17,350 nt of DNA from Paramoeba atlantica (Eukaryota; Protista; Discosea), in contig CDRNVI010000120.1 of the NCBI GenBank assembly GCA_977017575.1, forward strand, positions 1 through 17,350, read 5' to 3'. Of this stretch, positions 1 to 17,350 are shown one piece after another (the first letter of the stretch is position 1; each line of letters opens with the position of its first letter). Under the pieces are notes generated by a model that saw nothing but the letters and a program-made list of their open reading frames with translations, did not search any database and was not told where the DNA came from. The position numbers and the translations under genes were made by a program.

Positions 1-870
<870 letters not shown>

Positions 871-886
871 TAATTTTACTAATATA

Positions 887-960
887 ATCCCTCTGGTCTA
901 ATTGGTTAAGACATATCACTCATAATGGTACTGATATAGGTTCAAGTCCTATGGGGGATA
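887..960 (+). tRNA. tRNA with CAU anticodon (elongator Met or lysidine-type Ile)
   Basis: Acceptor ATCCCTC/GGGGGAT fully paired (one G-U), D stem GTCT/AGAC, loop CT-CAT-AA, T loop TTCAAGT. Met versus Ile cannot be decided from the sequence. Confidence 0.9.
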
Positions 961-961
961 A

Positions 962-1033
962 ATAGTTGTAGTGTAGTGGTTAACATATTAGTCTTCAAAA
1001 CTAATGACATAGGTTCAAATCCTATCAACTGTG
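962..1033 (+). tRNA. trnW: tRNA-Trp(UCA)
   Basis: Anticodon arm TTAGT CT-TCA-AA ACTAA (anticodon 995-997), paired acceptor, G73. Matches TGA at conserved Trp codons. Confidence 0.95.
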
Positions 1034-1065
1034 TTAATTATAGATGATATAATTAAATATAATAA

Positions 1066-1137
1066 AATAGGGTGACTGAAAGGTAAAGTATTGTTTTTTG
1101 GCAGCAAATCGTGTAGGTTCGAGTCCTACTCCTAAGT
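1066..1137 (+). tRNA. trnQ: tRNA-Gln(UUG)
   Basis: TTGTT TT-TTG-GC AGCAA, T arm GTAGG/CCTAC. Acceptor pairs 1-2 mismatched (AxG, AxA); exact 3' end uncertain by 1 nt. Confidence 0.9.
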
Positions 1138-1151
1138 ATTAAAATTTTTTT

Positions 1152-1224
1152 TTAAGGATAGTATAAATGGTTATTATAATTGATTGCAAATCTATAGATA
1201 TCGGTTCGAGTCCGTTTCCTAACT
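1152..1224 (+). tRNA. trnC: tRNA-Cys(GCA)
   Basis: Loop TT-GCA-AA, U73. Acceptor mismatches at pair 1 (TxC) and pair 3 (AxA). Confidence 0.93.
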
Positions 1225-1251
1225 TTTTTAAATTTAATATAAATATAATAA

Positions 1252-1324
1252 ATACCTATAGTTTAATTGGTTAAAACATGCATTTGATAAGTGCAAATTG
1301 ATAGTTCGAGTCTATCTGGGGTTA
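1252..1324 (+). tRNA. trnI: tRNA-Ile(GAU)
   Basis: TGCAT TT-GAT-AA GTGCA. Acceptor mismatches at pair 2 (TxT) and pair 3 (AxG). Confidence 0.94.
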
Positions 1325-1333
1325 TAAATAAAA

Positions 1334-1406
1334 AAATAGTTAGCTCAATTGGTAGAGCATCGGCCTTTTAAGCTGAGGGTTATAGGTTCGAGCCCTATAC
1401 TATCTA
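1334..1406 (+). tRNA. trnK: tRNA-Lys(UUU)
   Basis: TAGCTCAATTGGTAGAGC D arm, TCGGC CT-TTT-AA GCTGA. Acceptor mismatch at pair 2 (AxC). Confidence 0.95.
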
Positions 1407-1412
1407 TAAAAA

Positions 1413-1485
1413 TATGGAATGGTGTAATAGGTTAGCACATCGAGTTGTGATTTCGATAGTATGAGTTCAAGTCTCATTTCTTACC
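1413..1485 (+). tRNA. trnH: tRNA-His(GUG)
   Basis: TCGAG TT-GTG-AT TTCGA, C73. Pairs 1-3 all mismatched (TAT vs TAC); position -1 is A, not G. Confidence 0.94.
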
Positions 1486-1551
1486 TAAATTAAGAATAAT
1501 AAAATTAATAAAATATATATTTTATTAAAATTTTTTTATTAATTTGTAAAG

Positions 1552-1625
1552 ATAGATGTGATGGAATTGGTAGACATATTAGTTTTAGGCACTAAATTTT
1601 AGGGGTTCGAGTCCCCTCATCTGTA
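1552..1625 (+). tRNA. trnL: tRNA-Leu(UAG) with short variable loop
   Basis: Leu-type D arm GTGATGGAATTGGTAGACAT, TTAGT TT-TAG-GC ACTAA, variable region only ATTTT (1596-1600), U2-G71 wobble. Confidence 0.92.
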
Positions 1626-1660
1626 TTGTATGTATAAAAAAAGAAAAAAATATTTTTTAT

Positions 1661-1731
1661 AAGGATGTAGTTTAAAGGTAAAATATCTATTTTGGGTGTA
1701 GACGTTATAGGTTCAAATCCTATCGTCCTGA
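1661..1731 (+). tRNA. trnP: tRNA-Pro(UGG)
   Basis: TCTAT TT-TGG-GT GTAGA. A1xG72 where Pro tRNAs normally have C1-G72; A73. Confidence 0.94.
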
Positions 1732-1744
1732 TAATTATAATAAC

Positions 1745-1818
1745 AAGGAGGTAGCTTAATAGGCTAAAGCTTTAACCTGTCGAGTTAAAAGATGAGGGTT
1801 CGAATCCCTTCCTCCGCA
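1745..1818 (+). tRNA. trnD: tRNA-Asp(GUC)
   Basis: TTAAC CT-GTC-GA GTTAA. Pairs 1-2 mismatched (AxC, AxG); discriminator A. Confidence 0.93.
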
Positions 1819-2119
1819 TAAAATATAATAAAATATGTTTATTTTATTACTATATAATCAAGATGTTTTGTATATAAAATATAAAATATTATCTATTATA
1901 TCTATTATATCAATTTATGATAAATGTACATTTACCATATGAAATAACAGTCATAAAACATACATATTTTACTTAAAATTTTTTTAAAAAGAGAAAAAAT
2001 TATAAAATAAATAATTATAGTAATTTAAAAGATTTTATTTTTTTAATAAAATAAAAAATTAGTAAATTAATATGATTATTTATTTTAGATATATCTTACT
2101 TTAATAATATATGATTTAT

Positions 2120-2191
2120 TTTTTCTTCGTCTAATGGTTAGGACATTGCTCTTTCACAGCAGAAATAAGGGTTCAAATCCCTTAGAAATGA
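2120..2191 (+). tRNA. trnE: tRNA-Glu(UUC)
   Basis: TCGTCTAATGGTTAGGAC D arm, TTGCT CT-TTC-AC AGCAG. Pair 2 TxT, pair 1 U-G. Confidence 0.93.
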
Positions 2192-2292
2192 AATTATTTT
2201 ATCCGTATTAATTTAATTTAATAAAATTTTTTTGTAAATTTTTGAAATCTATTATACACTGATTTAAGTATATTATTTGTCACATATAATAA

Positions 2293-2344
2293 GGGGGGTT
2301 TGGGGGGTTTGTATAAGAGATAATATTTTATTTTCATATACAAA
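2293..2344. other. G6-TTT-G6 tract followed by an 8-bp stem (TTTGTATA/TATACAAA) in an AT-rich intergenic spacer
   Basis: GGGGGGTTTGGGGGG at 2293-2307; stem arms 2308-2315 and 2337-2344. Function is inferred only. Confidence 0.6.
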
Positions 2345-2365
2345 AATTTTTATTAATTATTTTTT

Positions 2366-2448
2366 AATGGTGTGATGGAATTGGTAAACATGATAGACTT
2401 AAAATCTATTGCCTTTTAGGCTTGAGGGTTCGAGTCCCTCCTCCAATA
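2366..2448 (+). tRNA. trnL: tRNA-Leu(UAA)
   Basis: ATAGA CT-TAA-AA TCTAT, long variable arm GCCTTTTAGGC. Mismatches at pair 2 (AxA) and pair 6 (TxT). Confidence 0.94.
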
Positions 2449-2466
2449 ACGATGAGTTAATTATTT

Positions 2467-2539
2467 TTTAAGATGGAGTAATAGGTTAACTCAGTGGTCT
2501 CATGAGCCACAGATGTAGGTTCGAGTCCTACTCTTCTTA
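2467..2539 (+). tRNA. trnM: tRNA-Met(CAU), probably initiator
   Basis: D arm TGGAGTAA...AACTC with the initiator-type A11-U24 pair, GTGGT CT-CAT-GA GCCAC. Pairs 1-3 all mismatched (TTT vs CTT). Confidence 0.9.
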
Positions 2540-2638
2540 TATAATTACGTAAATATTATTATGGATTACATTTGAATATGTAATCAATTTTGAATTTTTA
2601 TTAATTAGTAAAATATATGTATAAAAATATTTTCGAAA

Positions 2639-2878
2639 ATGGCAGGACAAGAAATTATGTTAATTTTTGCAAAAAAAGTAGGTGCTGGTTTAGCTACTAT
2701 AGGTTTAGCAGGTGCTGGAGTAGGTATAGGAATAGTTTTTGGAGCTTTTTTAATTGCTTATTCACGTAATACTACAATTAAAAACGATTTATTTGGTTAT
2801 ACTTTATTAGGTTTCGCATTAACAGAAGCAATTGCTCTGTTTGCCCTAATGATGGCTTTCTTAATCTTATATACTTAA
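2639..2878 (+). CDS. atp9: ATP synthase F0 subunit c
   Basis: [17 protein letters not shown] glycine-zipper helix and GFALTEA proton-binding Glu motif, 79 aa. Confidence 0.98.
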
Positions 2879-2905
2879 TCAACCTATTTTTGTTGTTTTG
2901 TATTT

Positions 2906-2979
2906 AATTGGTTAGTTTAATTGGTTAAAATTATGATCTTCTAAATCATTAGATATAGGTTCGAGTCCTATACCAATTA
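2906..2979 (+). tRNA. trnR: tRNA-Arg(UCU)
   Basis: ATGAT CT-TCT-AA ATCAT, perfect acceptor AATTGGT/ACCAATT. Confidence 0.95.
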
Positions 2980-2987
2980 TAATTTTT

Positions 2988-3068
2988 TATAGTGTGGCTG
3001 AGCGGTAAAGCGGTAGACTGTAAATCTATTGTATTTATACATCGTAGGTTCGAATCCTACCACTTCCA
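2988..3068 (+). tRNA. trnY: tRNA-Tyr(GUA)
   Basis: GTAGA CT-GTA-AA TCTAT, long variable arm. Pairs 1-3 all mismatched (TAT vs TCC); templated repair gives the Tyr-typical GGA start. Confidence 0.95.
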
Positions 3069-3129
3069 TTTGATTAAAATATATAATAATGTTGAATAAT
3101 TTTTAAACAAATCATTTTAAAATTTTTTT

Positions 3130-4125
3130 ATAAATTTAAAATAGTATTAAACGGATATCTTGCCAATAATAAGTTTATAGACGTTTTAAAACGTAATGTG
3201 AAAGTAAAATAATAATAATTTTTCAATATTCACGTATCTAAAGGGAAAACCCAATTAAATTAAATAATTAAAGAATATCTAATGAATTGAATCATCTTAG
3301 TAATTAGTTAAAAAAAATAAAAATGATATTATTAGTAGTGGCGAGCGAAAATAAAATAGCTAAATTAAACAATAATATAAATAAAAAATATAATAATTTG
3401 GAATAATTAACAAAATAAGTAATAGTCTTGTTATTTTTTATTATTATTATTGGTTTTGAGTAAAATAAAAACTAAATTTGTTTGAAGATTAGAGTACCAT
3501 CTCTAAAGGCTAAAGAATTATTATTGAGCGATAGTGAAAAAGTACTGTGAAGGAAAGATGAAAAGAAATTTTTTAAAAATGTTGAAATAGATTTTGAAAT
3601 TTAATACTAAATAGCACTTTAAGCATAAATAATTATATGTTAAAAGGTACCTTTTGCATAATGGGTCAGTGAGTTAATTATTGTAGCAAAATAAAAAATT
3701 ATTAAATTTTTTAATTGTAATTAATATATTTATAGTTATAATAATTAGACCCGAAACCAAGTGATCTAGTCATGGGCAGATTGAAGTTAATTAAATATTA
3801 ATGGAGGATCGAACCCGTTTATGTTGCAATATATTGGGATGACCTATGATTAGGGGTGAAAGGCTAATCAAACTTGGAGATAGCTGGTTTTCTACGAAAT
3901 CTATTTAAGTAGAGATGAAATTTAAATTTATATAAGGTAGAGCTACCATATTGGGTTGTTGAATCCATATGAACTTCAAATAAATATAAAGTAAAAATTT
4001 TAATTTCGATATATGGCGAAAAGGTTGTATATCAAGAGGGAAAGAGCCCAGATTATAAATTAAGGTTTCTAAATTAATATTAAGTTAAAAAGTATATTAT
4101 AATATTAACAATGAATAGGAGGTAG

Positions 4126-4159
<34 letters not shown>

Positions 4160-5900
4160 CAGCTCACTATTGATAGATATTTATATACAAAAATATAACG
4201 AAAATAAATATTATACCGAAATTATAAAATATTATTTAAAATAATAATATTGGTAGTAGAACGTTTTATAAAAGAAAAAAAAAATTGTTAAATTATAAAA
4301 TTAAAATTGAATATACTGGCATAAGTAGCAAAAATAATGTTATAAACATTATCATCTAAAAATCTAAGGTTTCTAATGTCAAGATAAACTGCATTAGGTT
4401 AATCGGTCCCTAAAATGAATATGATAGTAATAATTGAAGGGTAGTTAAAGAGTTATAAGGATAACATAATATTTTTAACGTTATTAGTAGATGACAGTTT
4501 ATTTTTTAAATATTTTAGGATCAAATTTTAATAAATATAGTAAAACATTGTGTGATATATTCGAATATATTGATTGAAATATTTAAAAAATAAATTCAAG
4601 AAAGAATACTAATATATAAAACCGTACTAAATCCTACACAGGAGGATTAGTAGAGAATACTAAGATGAATAATTGAATAATATCGAAGGAACTCGGCAAA
4701 TTAACTCTGTAACTTCGGGAGAAAGAGTATTTTTATATATACATTATATGTATATAAAAATGTAACAGAATAGAGGATGGCGACTGTTTAACAAAAACAC
4801 AGGACTTTGCAAAATTAATTAATGATGTATAAGGTCTGACACCTGCCCGGTGCTATAAAGGTAATTGTTATTGTTAATATATTATTTAATGTATTAGCTT
4901 TATATAGAATGAATAGTAAACGGCAGCTGTAAATATAACGGTTCGAAGGTAGCGAAATTCCTTGTCGAGTAAGTTTCGACCTTGCATGAATGGTGTAACG
5001 ACTATCCTACTGTCTCCGGTATTATATTAGCGAAATTGAATTCTCTGTGCAGATGCAGCGTATTAATAGCTAGACGGAAAGACCCTATGCACCTTTACTG
5101 CAGTTATATTTTGTTATTAAAAATTAAATTTATAGGATACAAACTAATCGTTTTAAAATTTTAATATTAGTTAATTGTTTAGATAATCTTGGAATAGTTT
5201 GAATTTAATTTTTAAAACTTAATAATTTTTTATTGACAGAATATATTTGGTAGTTTCTCTGGGGCGGAGACCTCATAAAATGTAACTGAGGTGTACAAAG
5301 GTAATTAAAATTTTATTAGAAAATTTTGGCGTGTAATGGCTAAAAATTACTTAACTGTGAGATTTACAAATCAAACAGAGATCTTTTTTATTAAAAAGGT
5401 CGGTCATAGTGATCCAATATAATTGAATGGAAAATATATTGCTCAACGGATAAAAGGTACGCTAGGGATAACAGGCTTATGACTCCGGAGAGAAGATATC
5501 GACGGGGTTGTTTGGCACCTCGATGTCGATTGGTCACATCCTGGTTAAGAAAAATGTTCCAAGGGTAAGGCTGTTCGCCTTTTAAAGTGGCACCTGAATT
5601 GGGTTCAGAACGTCGTGAGACAGTTCGGTTCCTATCTACTATTAATTAATTAAAATTGAAGGAATCTTATCTTAGTACGAAAGGACTGGAGAAGGAATAT
5701 CACTGGTAAATCGGTTGTAATTATAATTGCATAGTCGAGTAGCTAAATATTAATAATATAATTATTGAATTCAATCAGATATAAGAAGATTATCCTAAAA
5801 TATTTTAAAAGTATTGATTGTAAAAGATTATTACGAAATTAAGTTATGTGTGTAAGTCCTGTGAAGGATTGAGCTAAATAATTTTAAGAATCAATCTAAT
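3130..5900 (+). rRNA. rnl: Mitochondrial large-subunit rRNA (ends approximate, no intron seen)
   Basis: Colinear 23S landmarks: AGTACTGTGAAGGAAAG, GACCCGAAACCAAGTGATCTA, GGAACTCGGCAAA, GTAGCGAAATTCCTTGTCG, GGGATAACAGGCT, GGCACCTCGATGTCG, GGGTTCAGAACGTCGTGAGACAGTTCGGT, AGTACGAAAGGAC. Confidence 0.97.
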
Positions 5901-6029
5901 TTATAAAAAGAAAAAAGAAAAAAGAAAAAAAATTTCTATATAAGAAAAAATAAAATATATAATATTTTGAAAATATTATATGTAATAAAACAACAAACTT
6001 TAAATTAAAGTTTGTAATTTGTAAAACAA

Positions 6030-6102
6030 TACTTGGTAGTTTCAATGGTAAAATAATTGGCTGTTAACCAATCAGATGTAGGTTCGAATCCTGCCCAGGT
6101 CG
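6030..6102 (+). tRNA. trnN: tRNA-Asn(GUU)
   Basis: ATTGG CT-GTT-AA CCAAT, G73. Pair 1 TxC. Confidence 0.94.
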
Positions 6103-6116
6103 TTGTATAAAAATAA

Positions 6117-6205
6117 GTTTATGTGGCTGAGTGGTTTAAAGTAATCCTCTTGAAAAGGATCGTATAATTTTAATTATACCGTGGGTTCGAATCCCACCAT
6201 AATCT
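6117..6205 (+). tRNA. trnS: tRNA-Ser(UGA)
   Basis: ATCCT CT-TGA-AA AGGAT, long variable arm. Pair 2 TxT; discriminator T. Confidence 0.94.
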
Positions 6206-6265
6206 TAATATAAAAAAAAAGGAAAAAATTTATGTAAATTATATAATATATAATATATTATATAT

Positions 6266-7797
6266 AAATACTTGTATGTTTTATTCTGGCTTTGAGTAAA
6301 TGCTAGTAGTTCGCTTAACACATGCTAGTCAATTAAAATTTAAAATTTAAAATTAATGGCGTAAGGGTGAGTAATATATAAAAACGGGACTTATAATTAT
6401 GTTTATATTATAAACTGGTTTATAAAGATTTAGGTAGTTGGAGGTGTAATAGACTAACAAGCCGATAATTCTTAGTTGATCTTAGAAGGAGGTACAACCA
6501 CATTGGGAATGAGAAAAGGCCCAAGTTCCATTAGGAGGCAGCAGTGAGGAATATTGAACAATGAGCGAAAGCTTGATTCAGCGAAACTACCTGAATTATG
6601 ACAATTTATTGAAAAATTCTTGTTTAAGTGAGCATAATGAGGTTAAACTTAAGAATAAGCATCGACTAACTTCGTGCCAGCAGTCGCGGTGATACGGAGG
6701 ATGCGGGTGTTACTCAGCATTACTGGGCGTAAAGCGTATGATAAGTGGTTTATTTTTTAATAATATAATTTTAAAGGCGTTATTAGTAATAATGAATAAA
6801 TTATATATTAGTAAACTAAGAGTATTATTCAGATATATAGTATTCATAGAGGAAAGGTGAAATTTTATGATACTATGGAGACTATCAGAAGGTGAAAGCT
6901 ATATATTAGATTTATACTGACACTAAAGTACGAAGGTATGGGTATCAAAGAGGATTAGAGACCCTTGTAGTCCATACAGACAACGATGGATGCTAACTGT
7001 AGGAAATATTTTTGTGGTTTAGCTAACGCGTAAGCATCCCGCCTGGGGAGTATGATCGCAAGATTTGAACTCAAAGAAAGTGGCTGAGATTTGGTACGAA
7101 CGGTGGAACATGTGGTTTAATCTGATATAACGCATAAAATCTTACCAATTCTAGATTGAAAAAAATTATAATAAATATAGTAAACTTTATATAATTTTTT
7201 TAAGCAGGTGTCGCATGGCTGTCGTCAGCTCGTGTAGTGATATGTATGGTTAGGTCCTGTAACGAGTGTAATCCTTACAATATAATAAAATATATGATAT
7301 ATTATTATATTATTATATGTTATATTATTATATGTTATATTATTATATTTTATTATATTGTATTATTAATTATATATTAAATGAAATAGAGGAGGACGTC
7401 AAGTAGGTATGGCCCTGATGAATTGGGCTACACACGTGTTACAAAAATAATTACAAAAAAAAAATAAATTGTGAAATTTATTTAAATTATAAAGATTATT
7501 ATAGTTCGGATTATTTTTTGAAAATAAAAATATGAAGTTGAAATCGTCAGTAATCGAAAATTAGAATGTTTCGGTGAAATGGGATCCAAATCTAGTACAC
7601 ACTGCCCGTCACGCCAAGAAAGTTGTTAATATTGGAAAAATTATAATTAATAATTTATATTTATTAATTATTTTTAATCTATTGGAGATAATTAATTTTT
7701 AATAAAATATTATTAATTATTTAATTTGAATGTATTGATAGTAATCAGGGTGAAGTCGTAACATGGTAGTGGTAGGGGAACCTGCCGCTGGATGGAA
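6266..7797 (+). rRNA. rns: Mitochondrial small-subunit rRNA (ends approximate)
   Basis: 16S landmarks: TTAACACATGCTAGTC, GGAGGCAGCAGTGAGGAAT, GTGCCAGCAGTCGCGG, GGATTAGAGACCC, GCTGTCGTCAGCTCGTG, GTACACACTGCCCGTCA, GAAGTCGTAACATGG, GGGGAACCTGCCGCTGGAT. No anti-Shine-Dalgarno tail. Confidence 0.97.
7306..7350 (+). repeat. Three tandem 15-mers (TATATTATTATATGT x2 plus one variant) inside an SSU rRNA variable region
   Basis: Copies at 7306-7320, 7321-7335 and 7336-7350. Confidence 0.8.
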
Positions 7798-7799
7798 AA

Positions 7800-7900
7800 T
7801 AAATTTATATTTTTTTAAAGGTAAGCTTATCGAACCCCTTTAAAATATTATATATTAAATTATATTCTCGTAAAAATTTTTTATAAGAGTGTATAATTTA
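7800..7900 (+). rRNA. Candidate highly divergent mitochondrial 5S rRNA
   Basis: Directly follows rns. Terminal pairing 7800-7810/7891-7900; 9-bp stem 7813-7821/7837-7845 capped by a loop containing ATCGAAC (cf. bacterial loop C CCGAAC); second arm ATATTCT 7862-7868/AGAGTGT 7886-7892. Confidence 0.35.
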
Positions 7901-7922
7901 TATTAATACAAATCATATTTTA

Positions 7923-8011
7923 GGTGAGTTGACCGAGTGGTTGAAGGTGTCGATCTGCTAAATCGATATATTATTCATATAATATCATGGGTTCGAATCC
8001 CATACTTACCT
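7923..8011 (+). tRNA. trnS: tRNA-Ser(GCU)
   Basis: TCGAT CT-GCT-AA ATCGA, long variable arm, paired acceptor, discriminator T. Confidence 0.95.
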
Positions 8012-8044
8012 TATAAAAAAATAATTTGTAATTAAAAAAAGTTT

Positions 8045-8117
8045 TTGGGGGTAGCTCAGTAGGTAGAGCGAAAGCCTGAAAAGCTTTAGGTCATTGGTTC
8101 AAACCCAATTCTCCACA
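8045..8117 (+). tRNA. trnF: tRNA-Phe(GAA)
   Basis: TAGCTCAGTAGGTAGAGC D arm, AAAGC CT-GAA-AA GCTTT. Pair 1 TxC. Confidence 0.95.
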
Positions 8118-8234
8118 TAAAACTTATATTAAATTTAATTATATATGGAATCATTAAAAAGAAAAAGAAAGAAAATTAAAAAAATAGAAAAAGTTTAAAA
8201 AAATAGAAAAATTAAGGAAAGAAATAATACAAAT

Positions 8235-8816
8235 ATGTTTGAAAAAAAAGAAAGTTTAATAAAAAATAGAAAAATTAAATTAATAAAAATTAATAGATTT
8301 AAATTACCTTCAGTTACTTGATTATATAAAAAAAGGTTTAATATAAAATTAAAAAGCAAGTATATATATGCAGCAAAATTATCTTTTTTTAAAAAAAGAT
8401 ATTTATTTATTAATATACTAAAAAATTTTTTAAAGGGTTCAAAATTAGATTGGTTATCTTTGAAATTTTGTACTATTAATTTAATATTAAAATTTAGAAA
8501 AAATACTTATTTAAATTTTTCGCATATTAATGGTAATGTAATAAAAAATTTTTCATGTGGTTTTTATTATAAAAAATCATTAAAAAAAACATATTTTGCT
8601 TTAAATTCATTAATTGTAGCTTCAAAAATTGATTTTAAATATTTATATATGAAAAAATGATTCATATTAAATATAATTTATAAATATTATACTCGTAAAA
8701 TTTTGAGAAATTTAAAAGAATTATTTGAGACTACACCTTATAATTTAAAATTTATTAATTTTATAAAATCAAAAGCTCATAATGGTATAAGAAAGAAAAA
8801 GAGAAGAAGAAAATAA
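8235..8816 (+). CDS. rps11: Ribosomal protein S11 with long basic N-terminal extension (193 aa, UGA=Trp)
   Basis: KNTYLNFSHINGNVIKNFSCG resembles the S11 core NNTIVTITDRQGN...; the C-terminus KAHNGIRKKKRRRK matches PHNGCRPPKRRR. An in-frame ATG at 8145 is separated by TAA 8196 in an A-run region, so the start is uncertain. Confidence 0.85.
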
Positions 8817-8819
8817 TAA

Positions 8820-9143
8820 ATGAAAAAGAAAAAAATTATAAATTATTTAGATAATTCTTTTTTAAGTTTATTATCTATAGAATATAAAAAAAAATTAAAT
8901 AATAATATATCTATTGAATTAAAGTATTTTTATTGATTATATAAGAATGTATATATACGTAATATTAAAGGATTAATTATAAATTTTAATAAAAAACAAT
9001 ATTTAAATATGGAAAGTTTTTTATTATATTATAGGTATAAAAATATACGATTAAATCAATTATATTTTGTTACTTCACCTTTTAATCTATTTTTAAAATA
9101 TAAAATTAGTAATATTAAAAAATATAAATTATATATATTATAA
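8820..9143 (+). CDS. Unassigned 107-aa basic ORF, possibly a very divergent ribosomal protein
   Basis: ATG 8820 to TAA 9143, open with TGA 8934=Trp, exactly filling the rps11-nad9 gap. Missed by the ORF track. Confidence 0.7.
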
Positions 9144-9155
9144 ATAAAAAAAAAT

Positions 9156-9746
9156 ATGTTATTAAAAAAAAATAGTAATAATTATGCTGTAAATTATATA
9201 TTAAATTTACTAATTAAATATATTTCGCATATAAAAATAACAGATGAATTTATTAAAATTAAATTAGTATCAAAAGATTATTTAGGTTTTGTTTTAAATA
9301 TTTTTAATAAGCATACTTTTTTAAGATATAAGGTAATAACTGATATTTGCTGTAGTGATTTTATTGATAGAGCTAAACGTTTTGAAATTGATTATAATTT
9401 ATTAAGTATAGATTATAATTCTAGATTAATTATTTCTGTATCTTGTGATAAATTAGATGTTATAAGATCTATTACTGATATTTATTTAGGTGCCGATTGG
9501 TTAGAACGTGAAGTTTGAGATATGTATGGTATTTTTTTCATGGGTCATAAAGATTTAAGACGTATATTAACCGATTATGGTTTTGAAGGTTATCCGTTTC
9601 GTAAAGATTTTCCTTTAAATGGTTATTTAGAAATAAGGTATGATGAAGATAAACAATATTTGATTTATGAGCCTATTGAATTAATGCAAAATATGAGATC
9701 ATATAGTTTTACTAATCCTTTATTAAATAAAAAATATATACTTTAA
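9156..9746 (+). CDS. nad9: NADH dehydrogenase subunit 9
   Basis: ADWLEREV(W=TGA 9516)[32 protein letters not shown] signature. Joins two ORF-track pieces. Confidence 0.98.
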
Positions 9747-9750
9747 AAAC

Positions 9751-10935
9751 GTGAATAAAATATTTAAAAAAATAAAAACTTTTACAATTAATTTTGGACC
9801 ACAGCATCCAGCAGCTCATGGAGTTTTAAGATTAATATTAGAATTAAATGGTGAAATTATAGAAAGAGCTGATCCTCATATAGGATTATTACATAGAGGT
9901 ACTGAAAAATTAATAGAATATAAGACTTTTATACAAGCTTTACCTTATTTTGATAGATTAGATTATGTATCTATGATGGCTCAAGAACATTGTTATTCAT
10001 TAGCTGTAGAAACTTTAAGTTCTACTAATGTACCTATAAGAGCAAAGATGATACGTATGATTTTTGGTGAAATAACTAGAATATTAAATCATATTTTAGG
10101 GTTAACTATACATGCGTTAGATGTTGGAGCGATGACACCTTTTTTATGACTTTTTGAAGAACGTGAAAAATTAATGGAATTTTACGAAAGGGTATCAGGT
10201 GCTAGAATGCATGCAGCATATATAAGACCAGGAGGTATTAGTCAAGATATACCTATGTCTTTTTGTGATGATTTATATAAATTTACACAAAATTTTATTA
10301 ACTCTTTAATGGAAATGGAAGAATTATTAAATAGAAATAGAATATGAAAGCAACGTTTAGTTGATGTAGGTATATTAGATTATAATCAAGCACAAACTTG
10401 AGGTTGTAGTGGAGTTATTTTAAGAGGATCTGGTATTCCTTGAGATATTAGAAAAAGTGAACCTTATGAATTATATAATGAAGTTGATTTTAAATCTTAT
10501 ATAGGAAATAAAGGTGATTGTTTTGATAGATTTTTAATTAGATTAAAAGAAATGCATGAGAGTTTAAAAATAATTTTACAACTTTTAAATAATTTAAAAG
10601 AAGGTCCTATTTCAAATTACAATAATAAATTAACTATACCTTCAAGATCATTAATGAAGTTTTCTATGGAATCTTTAATACATCATTTTAAATTATTTAC
10701 AGAAGGTGTTAATATACCTTTTAATGATGTTTATAGATCTATAGAAGCTCCTAAAGGGGAATTTGGTGTTTTTTTAGTTTCGGGAGGATTAAATAGACCG
10801 GTAAGATGTAAGATAAAAGCACCAGGGTTTAATCATTTACAATTATTAGATACATTATCAAAAGGACATATGATAGCCGACGTTGTTACTATTATAGGTA
10901 CTTTAGATATAGTTTTTGGGGAGGTTGATCGTTAA
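9751..10935 (+). CDS. nad7: NADH dehydrogenase subunit 7 (GTG start, 394 aa)
   Basis: [29 protein letters not shown](W)[31 protein letters not shown]. One frame once TGA=Trp. Confidence 0.98.
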
Positions 10936-10968
10936 TCAAATATTAATATAATATTAAATATTATATAT

Positions 10969-11424
10969 ATGCAAAAAAAATTAAATCGATTTTTTAATTT
11001 AAGAATTAATTCTAGAGGTGCCGCTTTTGAAAATTTAAATATAGGACCTAATTTAAGTCCTTATATGAATAGAGAGAAAATCAAAGAATTTTGTAATGAA
11101 TTTAATAAACAAACTTTTATATATAGATCGGAAGATTTATTAATATATGTTAGATTATTTTTATATACTGATAAATCATTTGTTTTTTTAATAAAAGGAC
11201 CTTCTTTTAGTACTTTATTAAAATTGGTTTGAAATATTATGAGTTTAACTAATAAAAATATTATGGAAAATTCAATTACATTAAGAAGTCTATATGATAT
11301 TGTTATATTGCGTAATTATTATTGATTTAAATTATATAATAATTTAAATCAAAATTGAATAAAATTGCGATTTAAAAATAGTTTTTTTTCTATATCAAAT
11401 TTACAAATTAATAAAATTATATAA
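10969..11424 (+). CDS. rpl11: Ribosomal protein L11 (151 aa)
   Basis: IGPNLSPY...KEFCNEFNKQT...VRLFLYTDKSFVFLIKGPS matches the L11 motifs GPALG...EFCKAFNAKT...VY.DRSFTF..KTP. Reads through three TGA codons to TAA 11424. Confidence 0.9.
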
Positions 11425-11430
11425 AAAAAT

Positions 11431-11811
11431 ATGAATAATAATATTATAGCTTTTTTTTATGTAAATCAATATAAATCGTTTAATAATTTTGAACAAATTT
11501 ATTTAAACATAATGAATTTATCTAATATTAATTTATTATATAAAATTTTTGTTAATATTAAATATTTTCTAATTATTAATAAGAAATATTTTAAAGATTA
11601 TTTTACTAATCTTTTAAATAATGATGAATTATTATTTTTATGATATAAAAATAAATTATATAGTAAAGGAACTTTAGAACAAATAAATAATAGTTTGTTA
11701 TTAAATTTAAATAAAAAGTATTATTTATTTAATGAATTAATGAAATTCAATTATGAAAAAAAAATTATTAATACGTTAATAATATTTAAATATAAATTAT
11801 GGCTTCGTTAA
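11431..11811 (+). CDS. 126-aa ORF, candidate divergent ribosomal protein L10
   Basis: Open to TAA 11811 with TGA 11641=Trp, overlapping the rps12 start by 13 nt. Occupies the rpl10 slot of the ancestral rpl11-rpl1-rpl10...rps12-rps7 order. Sequence support is weak. Confidence 0.45.
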
Positions 11812-12209
11812 ATCAATTAATAAGAAATAAAGGCAGAGTAAAAAAAAAAAGACGTACAAAAGTTCTTTTGTTAGATTCTTGTCCACAAAAAAGAGGTGTT
11901 TGTATTGAAATTAGAAATAGTGTTAGTCCAAAGAAACCAAATTCCGCTAAAAGAAAAGTAGCAAAAATAAGGTTATCAACAGGTAAAAAATTAATAGCAG
12001 TTATACCAGGTCAAGGTCATAATTTACAAAAATATTCAGTTGTTATGATTAGAGGAGGACGTGCTAGAGATATTCCAGGTGTACGTTATAAATTGATAAA
12101 AGGAAAATATGATTTTAGTAATTGAGAACGTGAAGAACGAAATAAAAGTCGTTCTAAATATGGTTTGAAAAAAAAAAAGAAGGAAGGAAAGATTTTAAAA
12201 GATGAATAA
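11799..12209 (+). CDS. rps12: Ribosomal protein S12 (136 aa)
   Basis: [45 protein letters not shown]. Reads through TGA 12123. Confidence 0.98.
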
Positions 12210-12621
12210 TTGAATAAAATATTTAATACAATTATTAATAAGAAAAGGAAAAAAACAACGAATTATATTAAGTTTAGAGAAAATTTTTATTAATATAAAA
12301 AAAATATATGGTTGTTTAAATACTTTTTTTAAACAAATAGAAACTAATATATTCATTAGAATGTTTTGTTATATTAAAAAAGTAGGAGGTAAAAAATTAT
12401 TAATACCACATATTTTAAAATCAAAAGATTCTATACCATATTCTGTTAAATTAATAGTTAGATCTATTAATTCTAGAACTGAGCGAAAATTTCAAGAACG
12501 TATTCAAAATGAATTAATAGATGTATATAATAATAAAGGTTTATCTATAAAAAAAAAAAATGATATGTATAGATTAATAGAAGCAAATTATACTAATATT
12601 AGATTTAAAAGAAAAAAATAA
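12202..12621 (+). CDS. rps7: Ribosomal protein S7 (139 aa)
   Basis: ATG overlaps the rps12 end by 8 nt. LIRKGKK, KKVGGKKLLIP, NELID..NNKG..IKKK...EAN motifs. Confidence 0.92.
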
Positions 12622-12624
12622 TAT

Positions 12625-13080
12625 ATGTTAAAAAGGAAAAAACAGTCAAAAACAATAAAATATTTAACATTTGGTTTAAAAAATTATGCAGGAGTTAATA
12701 ATATGGGTCATAAAACAGTTAAATCAAAGGGAACTAGAGTTAAAAAGAAATATAGATTAATTGATTTTTTTAGAACTTACGTTGATATACCTGTAATGGT
12801 ATTAAGAATTGAGTATGATCCTAATAGATCTGCAAATATAGCTTTAATATGTTATAAAAATGGATTTTTATCTTATATTTTAGCAGCCGAAGGTTTGAAA
12901 GAAGGTATGGTTTTAAATTCAGTAGATAAAATTGTTGGTTCTACATATCCTTTAGTAAATATAAAATTTGGTTCTTTTATATCTTGTATGGAATTAAAAA
13001 AAAAAAAAGGAAGTAAAGTAGCTAGATCTGCAGGTTCTTTTTGTTTATTAATATCACAAATAAATGAAAATTATTATTAT
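12625..13080 (+). CDS. rpl2: Ribosomal protein L2, truncated at ~152 aa by the junction
   Basis: KKYRLIDF, RIEYDPNRSANIALI, SYILA.EG, VARSAGS are present. The conserved C-terminal half (GKAGR, RGVAMNPVDHPHGGG) is absent. Confidence 0.95.
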
Positions 13081-13090
13081 TGCGTTAACC
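13075..13090. other. Junction between mitochondrial and bacterial-type DNA
   Basis: rpl2 homology stops, composition changes abruptly, and genes to the right use TGA as stop and have Shine-Dalgarno sites. Confidence 0.9.
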
Positions 13091-13321
13091 AATGATGAAA
13101 TTCATTTTATCATTGAGCTGTGTACTCATGAGTTAGATATTGATACGAAACTCAAGTTAGAGTTTGCACGCACTTGGAAAGATAACAGCGTTACTATTTC
13201 AATGACACCCGCAGAATTGCACGCTTTGGTTGAACTACTATTGCGAAAAGCAGAACATGCCAACGAGGATGTAAGAGACTGGGCAGAGGATATTGCTACC
13301 TGGCTCACAGAGCAGACTTAG
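13081..13321 (+). CDS. Hypothetical bacterial-type protein (~80 aa, acidic, helical); native 5' end probably lost at the junction
   Basis: ...ALTNDEIHFIIELC...RDWAEDIATWLTEQT-TAG reads from the + strand (track label is wrong). Its ATG at 13064 lies in rpl2 sequence. Confidence 0.6.
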
Positions 13322-13410
13322 TAAACAACGTGAGCTGATGATGCATTGATTATACGTATCGCTTAGGGCGTGTTAATCGTGGTAATGTGTATTTGTATAC
13401 TGGCGTAATA

Positions 13411-13680
13411 CTACCTGTTTGCCCCAAAATAATACCCAATGATTAACGCTACTAATGGCAAAATACCCATCTTGATAATTTCAAACAACACTTGGATTTT
13501 AAAAATAACGCCACCGACAAGACACAACAAAAATGCCACGAATGTGAAAAACAAAATTTGCTTAGCAAACTTAAGGATATCCTGTTCAGTAACAGGGTAT
13601 TCTTTTGGATCGGGTATGTAATCTTCGCTGTAGTGCAGATTATTATCCCGTTGGGAACTCAATTCGGTATTCTTTTCCAT
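13411..13680 (-). CDS. Small two-TM membrane protein (89 aa) ending IIGYYFGANR
   Basis: ATG 13680 (MEKNTELSS...), overlapping the RHH gene end by 38 nt. Hydrophobic stretches ILFFTFVAFLLCLVGGVIF and VLFEIIKMGILPLVALIIGYYFG. The track's longer start at 13827 overlaps most of the RHH gene. Confidence 0.7.
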   Translation of the reverse strand: MEKNTELSSQRDNNLHYSEDYIPDPKEYPVTEQDILKFAKQILFFTFVAFLLCLVGGVIFKIQVLFEIIKMGILPLVALIIGYYFGANR

Positions 13681-13861
13681 CTTTATCGTGCACTCGCAAT
13701 TCCTTACCGGCTTTTTGATCATCCAGTAACTTTGAAAACAATGAAATTGCCCATCTAGCTGCTGTGGAATTATCCGGTAACAATAGACTTTCACGTACAT
13801 TAGCCAATCGCTTTGCCGTTTCTTCATTCATCGTAAGATGCATGGATACTTTTTCACTCAT
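13643..13861 (-). CDS. Ribbon-helix-helix (CopG/Arc/MetJ-like) DNA-binding protein, 72 aa
   Basis: Alternating beta strand VSMHLTM, helix NEETAKRLANVRESL, turn, helix NSTAARWAISLF. SD GAGGT 9 nt upstream of the ATG. Confidence 0.75.
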   Translation of the reverse strand: MSEKVSMHLTMNEETAKRLANVRESLLLPDNSTAARWAISLFSKLLDDQKAGKELRVHDKDGKEYRIEFPTG

Positions 13862-13914
13862 AAGTCGTTTACCTCATTTACTTCTCACGTATACGCACCA
13901 TCTACATGACAAGT

Positions 13915-13950
13915 ATCTTATCTGTATAAGGTAAGTATATCAAATATACT
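13915..13950 (-). promoter_or_regulatory. Sigma70-type promoter with an overlapping palindromic operator
   Basis: Minus strand TTGATA (13943-13938), 17 bp, TAAGAT (13920-13915). AGTATAT-CAA-ATATACT (13934-13950) covers the -35 box. Confidence 0.6.
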
Positions 13951-13965
13951 CAGCTTATCAACTAG

Positions 13966-14220
13966 CTTAATGGCCATGCAGCAATTCCCGCTGGAAATTA
14001 GAATAACTGTTTAATACTGTAAATAATCATGAAAAATAGTTTACGAAAAATATATTAACATCATGTATTTGTAGAAAATCAAAAAACTTGATCTTTCTTA
14101 CAAGTACATATGGTTACATAAACACCCTCTGAAATTTTCGTAAACTTTTTTTAGCATTATCTTACAATTTTAATAAATTATGTCATTTTCCAGCGGGAAT
14201 AGCTGATGGCCATGATTAAG
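13966..14220. repeat. ~250-bp degenerate palindrome (nested inverted repeats)
   Basis: Outer arms 13971-13997/14187-14212 (one mismatch plus one indel); inner perfect 12-mer 14038-14049/14135-14146; central ATCAA-AAAC-TTGAT at 14078-14091. Confidence 0.8.
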
Positions 14221-14347
14221 AAAACTAAAAAAATCAGAGCCTTAGCAGATAAAAAGCATGGGGCGAGATTGAGCCACCTTTGGGACACCTAACAACCTTT
14301 ATCAATGTGATTCTGGCAGCTACCTCACCCCATGAAACCTTCTTACT

Positions 14348-14722
14348 TCACTTTCCTTCATACAGCCTCTCTTTCCAGCCAAGTGATAAACGCAACCCCA
14401 ATGCGCTGGTGATTTTGATCAGTATCAATAATCTCGGATTACGATGTTTAGCAAAAATGTCGTACAAATTGCGTCGGCTGATGCCTGTTAGCTTGGACAG
14501 CTGGGTGATACCGTGGATGTCGGCAATTTCTTTTAACGCCAACAACAAGACCTGTGCCTCTTCTTTTTCTGACTTCAGTGTACAATCCGGTAGTGTCTCA
14601 AAGTTGTTGTTGGTTGCTAGCTTATCGAATTTCTTCCTACAAAAACAAGTTACAACTTAAGGTGATTGAGCGAGAACAACAACTTTGAGACACTACCTAC
14701 AATCCATCTGGTTATGACACAT
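14348..14722 (-). pseudogene. XRE-type HTH addiction-module antidote-like gene (85 aa when repaired), interrupted by a MITE
   Basis: LLLALKEIADIHGITQLSKLTGISRRNLYDIF...NPRL..LIKITSALGLRL fits the HI1420-like pattern (A.ARGM.Q.A...GLSRE.LY....GNP.F.T..K...ALG..L). Removing the MITE plus one TSD restores ATG 14722: MCHNQMDCTLKSEKEEAQVLLL... Confidence 0.78.
14589..14697. mobile_element. 109-bp non-autonomous element (MITE), IS6-family-like ends
   Basis: Perfect 23-bp TIRs GGTAGTGTCTCAAAGTTGTTGTT (14589-14611 and 14675-14697), flanked by the 8-bp direct repeat TACAATCC (14581-14588 and 14698-14705). Confidence 0.9.
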
Positions 14723-14985
14723 CACACAATTCTCGTTTTCTTGTAATCAGGAATATCCTGCGGTGTTAAGTCATCACACAACCGAGACGCCTCTGCTAGC
14801 ATATCCGTTAAGCCACATAACACATCAAATAACTCTTGTTCTTTCACGTCTTTAGACTTAACTGTAATGTTAGCCATGCTCTTCATTTGGCAAAGCTTGG
14901 CGCACAGTGCTTCATACGGGCTGCGATAATTATCATCACCGCTCTTTTCGGATTTGTTGGAATTTGGTAAAGTTGGCTTAGTCAT
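14722..14985 (-). CDS. Hypothetical helical protein, 87 aa (MTKPTLPNSNKS...RIV)
   Basis: Strong SD GGAGG upstream of ATG 14985. Its TGA overlaps the next ATG (TGATG). The track's 156-aa version adds a non-coding-looking leader. Confidence 0.75.
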   Translation of the reverse strand: MTKPTLPNSNKSEKSGDDNYRSPYEALCAKLCQMKSMANITVKSKDVKEQELFDVLCGLTDMLAEASRLCDDLTPQDIPDYKKTRIV

Positions 14986-15023
14986 ACCGTTTAACCTCCA
15001 GTTAAATTTAAGGTTATGATTAG

Positions 15024-15142
15024 CCGCAGGAAGGTGGTCGTAACACGTTTCTGCGGTGCTTGTGTGGCAACGCCCACACGCTGTTTTCTTGCTTGGTAAC
15101 AACATGCCGATAACGCTGCCACATAGCGATACTTGCTCTGTG
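15024..15142 (-). promoter_or_regulatory. Three-hairpin structured leader upstream of the 14985 gene
   Basis: Stems CCGCAG/CTGCGG (15024-15056), GTGTGG/CCACAC (15062-15079) and CACATAGC/GCTCTGTG (15120-15142, one mismatch). Confidence 0.45.
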
Positions 15143-15730
15143 TGAGGGTAATAGCAACTTGGGAATGGCAATAAGAACGGGTATTGCCCCAAGGAGCGCT
15201 AACATTGCGCTGATGAGTGCATTGTGCTGCAAAATAAGGGCTATTACTGCCCTAATGAACTAGGACAACCATTCCAAATGCTTGTATTGAATAGCAACAA
15301 CAAATGCCAGTTAACTTGCCTGCAGTGCTACCAATCTACTTTGAAATGACGTGAAAAATAATTGGCGCAACAAAAACGTTATAGCGACTCTGTGTGCAAC
15401 AAACTCGATGTCAGTGCTACGTTGCCCTTAGTGCTCTTGAGTAAACGTAGCTAATGGCTTTTATGGAGATCTCAACAACATAAACAACACATGGCCTACA
15501 CTGCCTTATGAAAAACCTGCACAAAACCCCTAAAAAAACTTGATAAAACATCATCAAAAGAGCATAACGGTTGATGCCTAAAAATCACTGCTAACACAAG
15601 CCATTACCTCTGTATTTCTCTCTATTCCTGAGTCTGTAAACGTCCTTTATTAATTCTCTTAGCAAAATAACGCTTAACGCTTTGTTACTCATGGGCTTTT
15701 GCCTGTATTTCAAGTTTAGAGACACAACAT

Positions 15731-15778
15731 ATTATTTTAATAATAATAGTAATACTATTAAAAAATAATAATAAAAAA
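15731..15778. other. Near-pure AT tract centred on the palindrome TAATAGTA-A-TACTATTA (15744-15760)
   Basis: About 48 bp with only 2 G/C bases, in a GC-richer non-coding region. Confidence 0.55.
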
Positions 15779-17008
15779 GAGTAAACGAAGTAAAACAAGT
15801 GATACTCGAAATGGTAATACGTGTAAAACGATTACAAGTGTATTGTAAGACAATGTTAGCCTAGAATACGTGATAAAAACGAATTAGACTACGATCGTGA
15901 ATGATAGATGAGTTATCAGGGTTACTCGTGTTAGGTATATTATTTTCACAGGTGTAAAGAAATAAAAGTGCTAAAAATAATATTGCGCCGCGCCGCACCT
16001 GCAAACACGCAGATTCGTGACAAGAATAAAAACCAATGCGTAATTGATTTTAAATGTCGCGTATAACGGCCATACAAGATCGCTGCGCGCATTTCTACAC
16101 GCAAGGCATAGGGTATAGTGGCTCTTCAGGTTAAATCGTTGCTTAAATCGCTTTAATTTCACTTTGACGTTTAAATCATTTTTTCGTGCAAATGGAGTAA
16201 GCATTCACGCACACAAGCAATGCTATCGTACTCGCTTGACTCAGCACGTAATGGATCCACGCAAGAGCATGTGAGTGATCCACTTGCAACAGCGTGTAAC
16301 AAATCCACTTCGAGTACACGTTAAGCCATCGCGTTACCCACTTTGCTTTTGCGTTAACTGCATTTGCAAATCGCTAACACACCACCACTTCAGCAAGCCA
16401 CCTTCAATGCATAAAATCCCTGTTCTTTTAGTGTCAATACTAGGTATAGACTTAATCCAAACTTGCTAAAAATACACTAAGATAATTTTTTATACACTGC
16501 TTTCGTTACAAAACAAACACGTTAGCGTGCAACATCTTTTTTGCAACAAAAACGCGAAATTGTGATAGACTTTTCGCTACAGTCAGACGTGATTTACACA
16601 ACAGCGAATGCAAGTAACATGACTGACGAGTAGCGTTAACACAACGACGGTTAATTAAAACAACCAGCATTGTGTTAACGACGTAACGGTTGTAAACGTG
16701 TTAAGCACTACGCATAGACTCAACACAAACGTTGACACTGTTTGCAGAAGGTAGCGTTAAGCACACTGTTCATCGTTACCAGCTTAAACGACGTTACCGT
16801 ACAACAACTTTTTTGTAGTCACGGTAACAACACAGGATGGTAGAACAGCTTAACTGGGAGCTTCGAGACATAGAGAAACAGGAAACAGTCTAATACGAAT
16901 AGACGCTTAAACATTCTAGACAATCAAACACCTATGGTTCCTTCCTGGGGCTAAAACGCATTCGGGCACACGCGGCGCAAAATTTCGCTAGCGTCAGAGC
17001 AAAAAAAA

Positions 17009-17344
17009 GGGTTCGCAGTTCGCACCCTCATCATACAAAAACCTAATAAAATCAAATGCTTAACTCACAAAATTCACCATAAATGCGCTAATCTGGGTTT
17101 GCACCAAATTATGTTTAACTCATTGAATTTTTAGGATTTTTTATGAAAAAATGGACTGCAAACCTAAAACGCAACCAAGTTTGCGCCTATTCTAGGTTAA
17201 CCTATTGAATCTTAAAGAATATTTCTGAAAAAACCCCTGCAAACCCCTCAATCAACAGGGTTTGCACTCAATTTAGCTAACCCATTGAATTTACAGCTTT
17301 TTACCTAATTCTCAGTGCAACCCCCCATCTGACAGGGTTTGCAC
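17009..17344. repeat. Degenerate ~80-bp tandem repeat, 4-5 units, running to the window edge
   Basis: GGGTTTGCAC-like boxes at 17009, 17095, 17177, 17258, 17335; TAACYYATTGAAT at 17116, 17198, 17278; inverted TGCAA(A)CC boxes at 17157, 17238, 17316. Confidence 0.82.
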
Positions 17345-17350
17345 GTTCGC

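Follow-up and report, generated by a model that had tools for sequence, protein, structure and literature searches.

How can the tRNAs of a mitochondrial genome function when most of their genes encode a 5' end that is unable to pair with the 3' strand of the acceptor stem? This question is raised by the contig analyzed here (CDRNVI010000120.1, 17,350 nucleotides, hereafter the window), which is the entire contig C120 of a eukaryotic assembly (G000, 45.7 Mb in 248 contigs). Positions 1-13078 are mitochondrial DNA (mtDNA) of ~25% GC with every gene on the + strand, and 14 of the 19 tRNA genes in this part have non-pairing bases within the first three pairs of the acceptor stem. A first-pass annotation of the same DNA had proposed that these ends are repaired by 5' editing. 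Our analysis points in the same direction, and we consider Acanthamoeba-type 5' tRNA editing to be the most likely mechanism behind the 14 unpairable 5' ends, with a probability of roughly 0.85.

The tRNA genes were called with ARAGORN and with Rfam, which were concordant on all 19. Because the stems drawn by ARAGORN are sometimes 8 bp long or out of register (Gln, Cys, His, Pro and others), we fixed the canonical 7-bp register by setting the 7 nt immediately 5' of the two bases that precede the D stem against the 7 nt immediately 3' of the 5-bp T stem. The genes are listed below in this register, with their non-pairs (x) and the replacements predicted if the 3' strand serves as template.

887..960, + strand, tRNA(CAU) no. 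1 (Met1): acceptor stem fully paired; no editing predicted
962..1033, + strand, tRNA-Trp(UCA), reads UGA: fully paired, with a U2.G71 wobble
1066..1137, + strand, tRNA-Gln(UUG): A1xG72, A2xA71; predicted A1>C, A2>U
1152..1224, + strand, tRNA-Cys(GCA): U1xC72, A3xA70; predicted U1>G, A3>U; discriminator U73
1252..1324, + strand, tRNA-Ile(GAU): U2xU71, A3xG70; predicted U2>A, A3>C
1334..1406, + strand, tRNA-Lys(UUU): A2xC71; predicted A2>G
1413..1485, + strand, tRNA-His(GUG): UxC, AxA and UxU at pairs 1-3; predicted U1>G, A2>U, U3>A (5' end GUA)
1552..1625, + strand, tRNA-Leu(UAG): fully paired, with a U2.G71 wobble
1661..1731, + strand, tRNA-Pro(UGG): A1xG72; predicted A1>C (C1-G72)
1745..1818, + strand, tRNA-Asp(GUC): A1xC72, A2xG71; predicted A1>G, A2>C
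2120..2191, + strand, tRNA-Glu(UUC): U2xU71, with a U1.G72 wobble; predicted U2>A
2366..2448, + strand, tRNA-Leu(UAA): A2xA71 and U6xU67; predicted A2>U
2467..2539, + strand, second tRNA(CAU) (Met2): UxU, UxU and UxC at pairs 1-3; predicted U1>A, U2>A, U3>G (5' end AAG)
2906..2979, + strand, tRNA-Arg(UCU): fully paired
2988..3068, + strand, tRNA-Tyr(GUA): UxC, AxC and UxU at pairs 1-3; predicted U1>G, A2>G, U3>A (5' end GGA)
6030..6102, + strand, tRNA-Asn(GUU): U1xC72; predicted U1>G
6117..6205, + strand, tRNA-Ser(UGA): U2xU71; predicted U2>A
7923..8011, + strand, tRNA-Ser(GCU): fully paired
8045..8117, + strand, tRNA-Phe(GAA): U1xC72; predicted U1>G

The mismatches are concentrated at the end of the stem. 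Non-pairs make up 24 of the 57 pairs at positions 1-3 (nine at pair 1, ten at pair 2 and five at pair 3), as compared to a single broken pair among the 76 at positions 4-7, the U6xU67 of tRNA-Leu(UAA) (Fisher p = 8e-10). Apart from this one pair the acceptor mismatches are confined to pairs 1-72, 2-71 and 3-70, the pattern that characterizes Acanthamoeba-type 5' editing. The recount was identical to that of the first-pass annotation, which had named the same 14 tRNAs, the same isolated U6xU67 and three broken pairs each in His, Tyr and the second tRNA(CAU) (there called fMet); its span, 1066-8117, runs exactly from position 1 of Gln to the discriminator of Phe. All 19 genes pass the threshold of the Rfam tRNA model (40-69 bits), and its local alignments omit the stem ends of His (model 5-66), Met2 and Tyr (4-67) and Gln (3-68), which gives independent support for the broken stem ends of these four tRNAs. 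An artefact of the chosen register was considered and rejected, as the mismatches persist in the fixed register and the script was checked on 253 control tRNAs.

For this control the same script was run on 80 metagenomic mitochondrial contigs and one contig from a viral collection, all retrieved by the N-terminal part of nad7; the control set consists of 253 tRNAs on 76 unrelated mitochondrial contigs. Here non-pairs were rare, both at pairs 1-3 (7/759, 0.9%) and at pairs 4-7 (18/1012), and the difference between the window and the control at pairs 1-3 is highly significant (p = 2e-24).

Mismatches in a single contig may come from sequencing or assembly, and the window gives some reason for concern. 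Comparison with two sibling contigs revealed single-base homopolymer insertions in the window at 356, 508, 645, 1145, 1644 and 2119, that is six errors within the first 2.2 kb, and the one at 356 shifts the frame of cox1, the open reading frame (ORF) of which falsely ends at 411. All six are indels within A/T runs, and no tRNA is altered by them; even the indel at 2119, one base before tRNA-Glu, leaves the tRNA itself intact. More than 12 read-like contigs of the assembly cover the same mtDNA at ~100% identity and with intact genes. Exact copies of the 15 first-cluster tRNAs with their 3-nt flanks are found in 7 further contigs, except Glu, where the flank differs; the cluster matched 8-9 loci, and two of these are repeat samples of contigs in the count. 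The stretch with Asn and Ser(UGA) is the same in 9 other contigs, that with Ser(GCU) and Phe in 10. The U6xU67 pair of tRNA-Leu(UAA) is covered by 7 sibling contigs and is the same in every one of them. The contig is unpolished, yet the acceptor mismatches are substitutions common to all copies, in agreement with the first-pass view that they do not follow a homopolymer-error pattern. Paired stems in polished DNA had been named there as the outcome that would speak against editing, and what we observed is that independent contigs share the mismatches. With acceptor stems that are base-for-base the same in at least 7 other contigs, an artefact of an unpolished long-read contig is extremely improbable.

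The same observations bear on the possibility that the genes are decaying relics, either in a nuclear copy of the mtDNA or as pseudogenes, and that imported cytosolic tRNAs substitute for them. Such a scenario would fit the chimeric nature of the contig (see below) and the incomplete tRNA set, since tRNAs for Ala, Gly, Val and Thr are missing from the window and hence some import would be needed. However, decay would strike every position of a tRNA, whereas 75 of the 76 pairs at positions 4-7 are intact and 19 of 19 genes pass the Rfam threshold, and more than 12 contigs repeat the mtDNA part at ~100% identity and with its genes intact. We therefore regard relics as very improbable.

Which of the two strands carries the information can be addressed by base composition. 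The mismatched 5' bases are A or T in 24 of 24 cases. At 5' positions 1-3 the GC content is 8/57 (14%), with 11% in the surrounding spacers, as compared to 24/57 (42%) at 3' positions 70-72 (p = 0.0015), and positions 4-7 are balanced between the strands (40/76 vs. 39/76). C72 is present in 8 of the 19 window tRNAs, similar to the controls (114/253), whereas G1 is present in only 2 of 19 vs. 161 of 253 in the controls. The 3' strand thus looks selected and resembles that of a normal tRNA, and the first three 5' bases look neutral under AT mutation pressure. By this indirect compositional test the 3' strand is the informative one and the encoded 5' bases are dispensable. Since spacer-like 5' ends are combined with normal 3' identity bases, the cell most likely removes the encoded 5' end and copies a new one from the 3' strand. 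Copying the 3' strand does restore the identity bases listed in the first-pass annotation, i.e., C1-G72 in Pro, G1 in Cys, GGA in Tyr and GU in His. Like the mismatch pattern, its reproducibility and the statistics, the strand asymmetry is a direct observation on the DNA, and the decay of positions 1-3 to a spacer-like AT content offers a clean, RNA-free sign of discarded bases.

Editing could in principle also act on the opposite side, by cutting back the 3' strand and renewing it with the 5' strand as template. Such 3' tRNA editing is known from the centipede Lithobius and the jakobid Seculamonas, and goes with tRNA genes that overlap or lack their 3' end. Mismatches alone are silent on which strand is corrected (PMC4284800, section 5.1), and to that extent they would suit either direction. 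In the window, on the other hand, no tRNA gene overlaps its neighbour, with at least 1 nt of spacer in between. A 3' side rebuilt from the 5' strand would furthermore give all-A/U ends and lose G1-C72 and C1-G72, and it is the 3' strand that has a control-like composition and the 5' strand that is neutral. Rebuilding of the 3' side is for these reasons highly unlikely.

The compositional data are also relevant to a further explanation, in which there is no editing and the tRNAs function with frayed acceptor ends. Some tRNAs of animal mitochondria work despite mismatches, the U6xU67 of Leu(UAA) has to be put up with under any explanation, and a search of the assembly found no Thg1-like protein (TLP), as described below. 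Without editing, however, His, Met2 and Tyr would keep a stem of just 4 bp. In addition, 5' bases of spacer composition facing 3' identity bases (C72, G72) are unexpected if the encoded 5' bases are functional, and in the 253 control mitochondrial tRNAs just 0.9% of pairs 1-3 are mismatched. We find it improbable that the tRNAs are used as encoded.

The type of change required separates 5' editing by replacement from other kinds of tRNA editing. Of the 24 predicted changes, 21 are transversions, which excludes editing of the deaminase type; C-to-U and A-to-I editing would need transitions only, and the three transitions found here are all A>G, with no C>U. The predicted changes are thus of any type, as expected from nucleotide replacement rather than base modification.

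We infer the replacement at the RNA level, and its direction, from this pattern. In Acanthamoeba-type 5' editing the first one to three 5' nucleotides would be removed after transcription and re-synthesised in the 3'-to-5' direction with positions 72-70 of the 3' strand as template, so that Watson-Crick pairs would be restored by a total of 24 predicted replacements. tRNA-His is a special case, as its gene has A at -1 and C73 and G-1 is not encoded. If G-1 is required, this tRNA would receive four templated additions (G-1 opposite C73, followed by G1, U2 and A3), and would then combine G-1 addition and three replacements on one molecule.

Re-synthesis of this kind calls for a polymerase, and the first-pass annotation had suggested a search of the nuclear genome for TLP genes with mitochondrial targeting. 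We performed a six-frame search of the assembly with Pfam PF04446 (Thg1) and PF14413 (Thg1C) at E ≤ 10, which found a single Thg1-family locus with three exons on the minus strand of contig C151 (44253-45456, corresponding to L001:889-2293). The three exons were searched and translated singly. Their translations contain the RIDG and SDE catalytic motifs and HINNLYN, the Thg1 motif that is specific to eukaryotes and makes contact with the His anticodon (PMC6471195), and the best PDB match is human THG1 (3otb, E = 2e-44), with no TLP chain passing E = 1e-3. Judged by its sequence, the gene is a bona fide eukaryotic (canonical) Thg1. The open frame just upstream of its start is a low-complexity stretch rich in Glu, Lys and Arg, and is not a typical presequence.

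A Thg1 exon used as protein query turned up no further member of the family in the assembly. A profile of 31 archaeal TLP sequences matched only the Thg1 locus and no TLP, and its recovery of the Thg1 exon (50 bits, E = 5e-12) serves as positive control. An earlier profile of 4 TLP sequences had no match in the assembly, not even Thg1, and was therefore uninformative and superseded by the larger one; NCBIfam holds no Thg1 or TLP model. The suggested search hence gave canonical Thg1 and nothing else from the family, a negative for TLP that is moderately strong, as only first-look candidates were scored and an assembly gap or a TLP with short exons could hide a gene. A TLP split into short exons could escape because even intact archaeal TLPs score just 63-94 bits on the Pfam model.

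Several points weigh against 5' editing as proposed here. The editing is read from genes and not from mature tRNAs. The U6xU67 of Leu(UAA) is outside the known reach of 5' editing, which is three positions. No TLP was detected in the 45.7-Mb assembly, where the sole family locus is canonical Thg1, and Thg1 from yeast does not repair 5'-truncated tRNAs (PMC4284800). The earlier claim that about three quarters of the tRNAs are edited, including purine-to-pyrimidine changes, is supported at the level of the DNA (21/24 transversions, strand asymmetry), and the enzyme step attached to it is unsupported here, with canonical Thg1 as the only gene found.

We think it unlikely that a TLP is truly absent from the genome. 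It is similarly doubtful that extensive mitochondrial 5' editing proceeds here without any TLP, by the single HINNLYN-bearing Thg1 or by an enzyme outside the Thg1 superfamily. With Thg1 alone, the enzyme would have to enter the mitochondrion and copy template on many non-His tRNAs. If the absence of TLP is true, this amoeba would question the view of TLPs as the editing polymerase and would provide a natural test of the capabilities of canonical Thg1.

Further contigs in the collection used as control source display the acceptor-stem signature. It is present in 9 of 13 tRNAs on L057 (Ga0299906_10000390), the closest metagenomic relative, in 9 of 11 on L097 (JACKZZ010020106.1) and in 5 of 7 on L071 (Ga0105048_10004060). 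Both tRNAs of L070 (Ga0272446_1000919) are mismatched, with just two tRNAs on this contig. In L057 and L097 the 5' positions 1-3 are AT-decayed too. No signature was seen in the 19 other contigs with at least 5 tRNAs. The acceptor-mismatch script may therefore be used as a screen, having picked out three further environmental mitochondrial contigs plus the two-tRNA L070. A position-by-position rate test against the L057 orthologues was dropped, as the stems were too diverged.

The remaining genes of the mitochondrial part are as follows.

5' end of the window, before the tRNA cluster, + strand: cox1, 3' part
2639-2875, + strand: atp9, after the first tRNA cluster and followed by two more tRNAs
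3128-5908, + strand: large rRNA, followed by two tRNAs
6268-7803, + strand: small rRNA, followed by two tRNAs and then further ORFs
9144-9743, + strand: ORF of ~200 aa, putative nad9 by position, flanking nad7
10936-11421, + strand: ORF of 162 aa, flanking nad7
downstream end of the mtDNA part, + strand: nad7, then rps12, rps7 and the start of rpl2

The DNA at 1-13078 is mtDNA of amoebozoan type, probably from a Paramoeba-like amoeba. On sibling contigs the 17 kb upstream contains ORFs that, judged by eye, we take to be cob, nad3, atp6, nad5, nad6, nad11, nad1, nad4, nad2, atp1, cox2 and cox3. In the sibling contigs cox1 and cox2 are separate genes. UGA codes for Trp, as seen from the tRNA with anticodon UCA and from in-frame TGA codons. 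An exact-sequence look-up of atp9 in public assemblies gave no match.

Absent from the window are tRNAs for Ala, Gly, Val, Thr and the CGN Arg codons, and the 17 kb upstream, as covered by contigs C124 and C132, is devoid of tRNA genes. The missing tRNAs must be imported, or encoded in mtDNA beyond the window and these 17 kb. Two tRNAs with anticodon CAU (887-960 and 2467-2539) are present vs. a single tRNA-Ile (GAU) in a very AT-rich genome, and one of these is possibly a lysidine-type tRNA-Ile that reads AUA rather than a Met/initiator tRNA. The spacer between tRNA-Glu and tRNA-Leu(UAA), which is 11% GC, contains a G-rich island at 2293-2311 (two six-G runs with TTT between). Apparent palindromes in the AT-rich spacers were not counted as features, since this is low-complexity DNA and the complementarity is just 70-80%.

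Contig C120 is a chimera of mtDNA and bacterial-like DNA. Its tail, 13079-17350, is non-mitochondrial (38% GC), is found on this contig alone and truncates rpl2 at the junction; a comparison of the tail with plasmids gave no match. It carries the following ORF:

14351-14656, - strand: bacterial ORF of the HI1420-type antitoxin/HTH kind

Other copies also leave the mtDNA for unrelated DNA, namely sibling C124 (from 25035; L022-L023) at window position 7998 and sibling C132 (from 22770; L026) at 5436. The mtDNA is thus present as many read-like chimeric contigs and not as a single circle. An extra tRNA-Lys on the tail of C124 was rejected as a mitochondrial gene, as it is of bacterial type, 55% GC and fully paired.

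In Acanthamoeba a pair of Thg1-like proteins, AcaTLP1/2, is implicated in the repair step of 5' editing. A. castellanii was the first system in which such editing was shown (Lonergan & Gray 1993; Price & Gray 1999), and Dictyostelium, Polysphondylium, Physarum and chytrid fungi subsequently proved to have the same pattern; in each case a nuclease cuts off the mismatched 5' nucleotides, and 3'-to-5' synthesis restores the end (PMC4284800). The window resembles Acanthamoeba in that the mismatches are at pairs 1-3, that a large majority of the tRNAs is affected (12 of 15 there (PMC4284800), 14 of 19 here), that all kinds of base change occur and that the 3' strand is the template, which here is deduced from the genes. 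It differs in that cox1 and cox2 are separate genes and in the enzyme set, which is the opposite one: canonical Thg1 is missing in Acanthamoeba, where two TLPs are present (PMC3561963), whereas here Thg1 was found and no TLP was detectable.

Dictyostelium is likewise amoebozoan, has the same type of mismatch, and its mitochondrial tRNA-His has C73 and no encoded G-1. There, TLP3 performs 5' editing and TLP2 adds G-1 to mitochondrial tRNA-His (PMC5041481). In contrast to the 14 of 19 tRNAs predicted to be edited here, D. discoideum edits 10 of 18 (PMC4284800). Its mitochondrial tRNA-His is unmismatched, whereas that of the window has three broken pairs and also needs G-1, and its genome has Thg1 and three TLPs, whereas Thg1 alone was found here. 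The chytrids (Spizellomyces punctatus; Laforest et al. 2004, cited in PMC4284800) follow the same rule of pairs 1-3 and the same replacement chemistry, but belong to another supergroup and are unrelated in gene order and tRNA set.

A described mtDNA for comparison is that of Paramoeba pemaquidensis (KX611830), the host mtDNA of the Paramoeba-Perkinsela pair, with 48.5 kb, 22% GC and 20 tRNAs (PMC5601477, Supplementary Note 1.5). Compared by this published description, the two are alike in being AT-rich, in having nearly all genes on one strand and in carrying about 20 tRNAs. Neither the P. pemaquidensis mitogenome paper nor its supplements mention acceptor mismatches, editing or Thg1 (PMC5601477), and in the literature we found no report of editing in the Paramoeba group, vannellid mitogenome papers being outside that search. 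Taken together, our results would add a further amoebozoan lineage, apparently the Paramoeba group, to those with Acanthamoeba-type 5' editing, and the share affected here (74% of the tRNAs, 24 sites) would be among the highest known.

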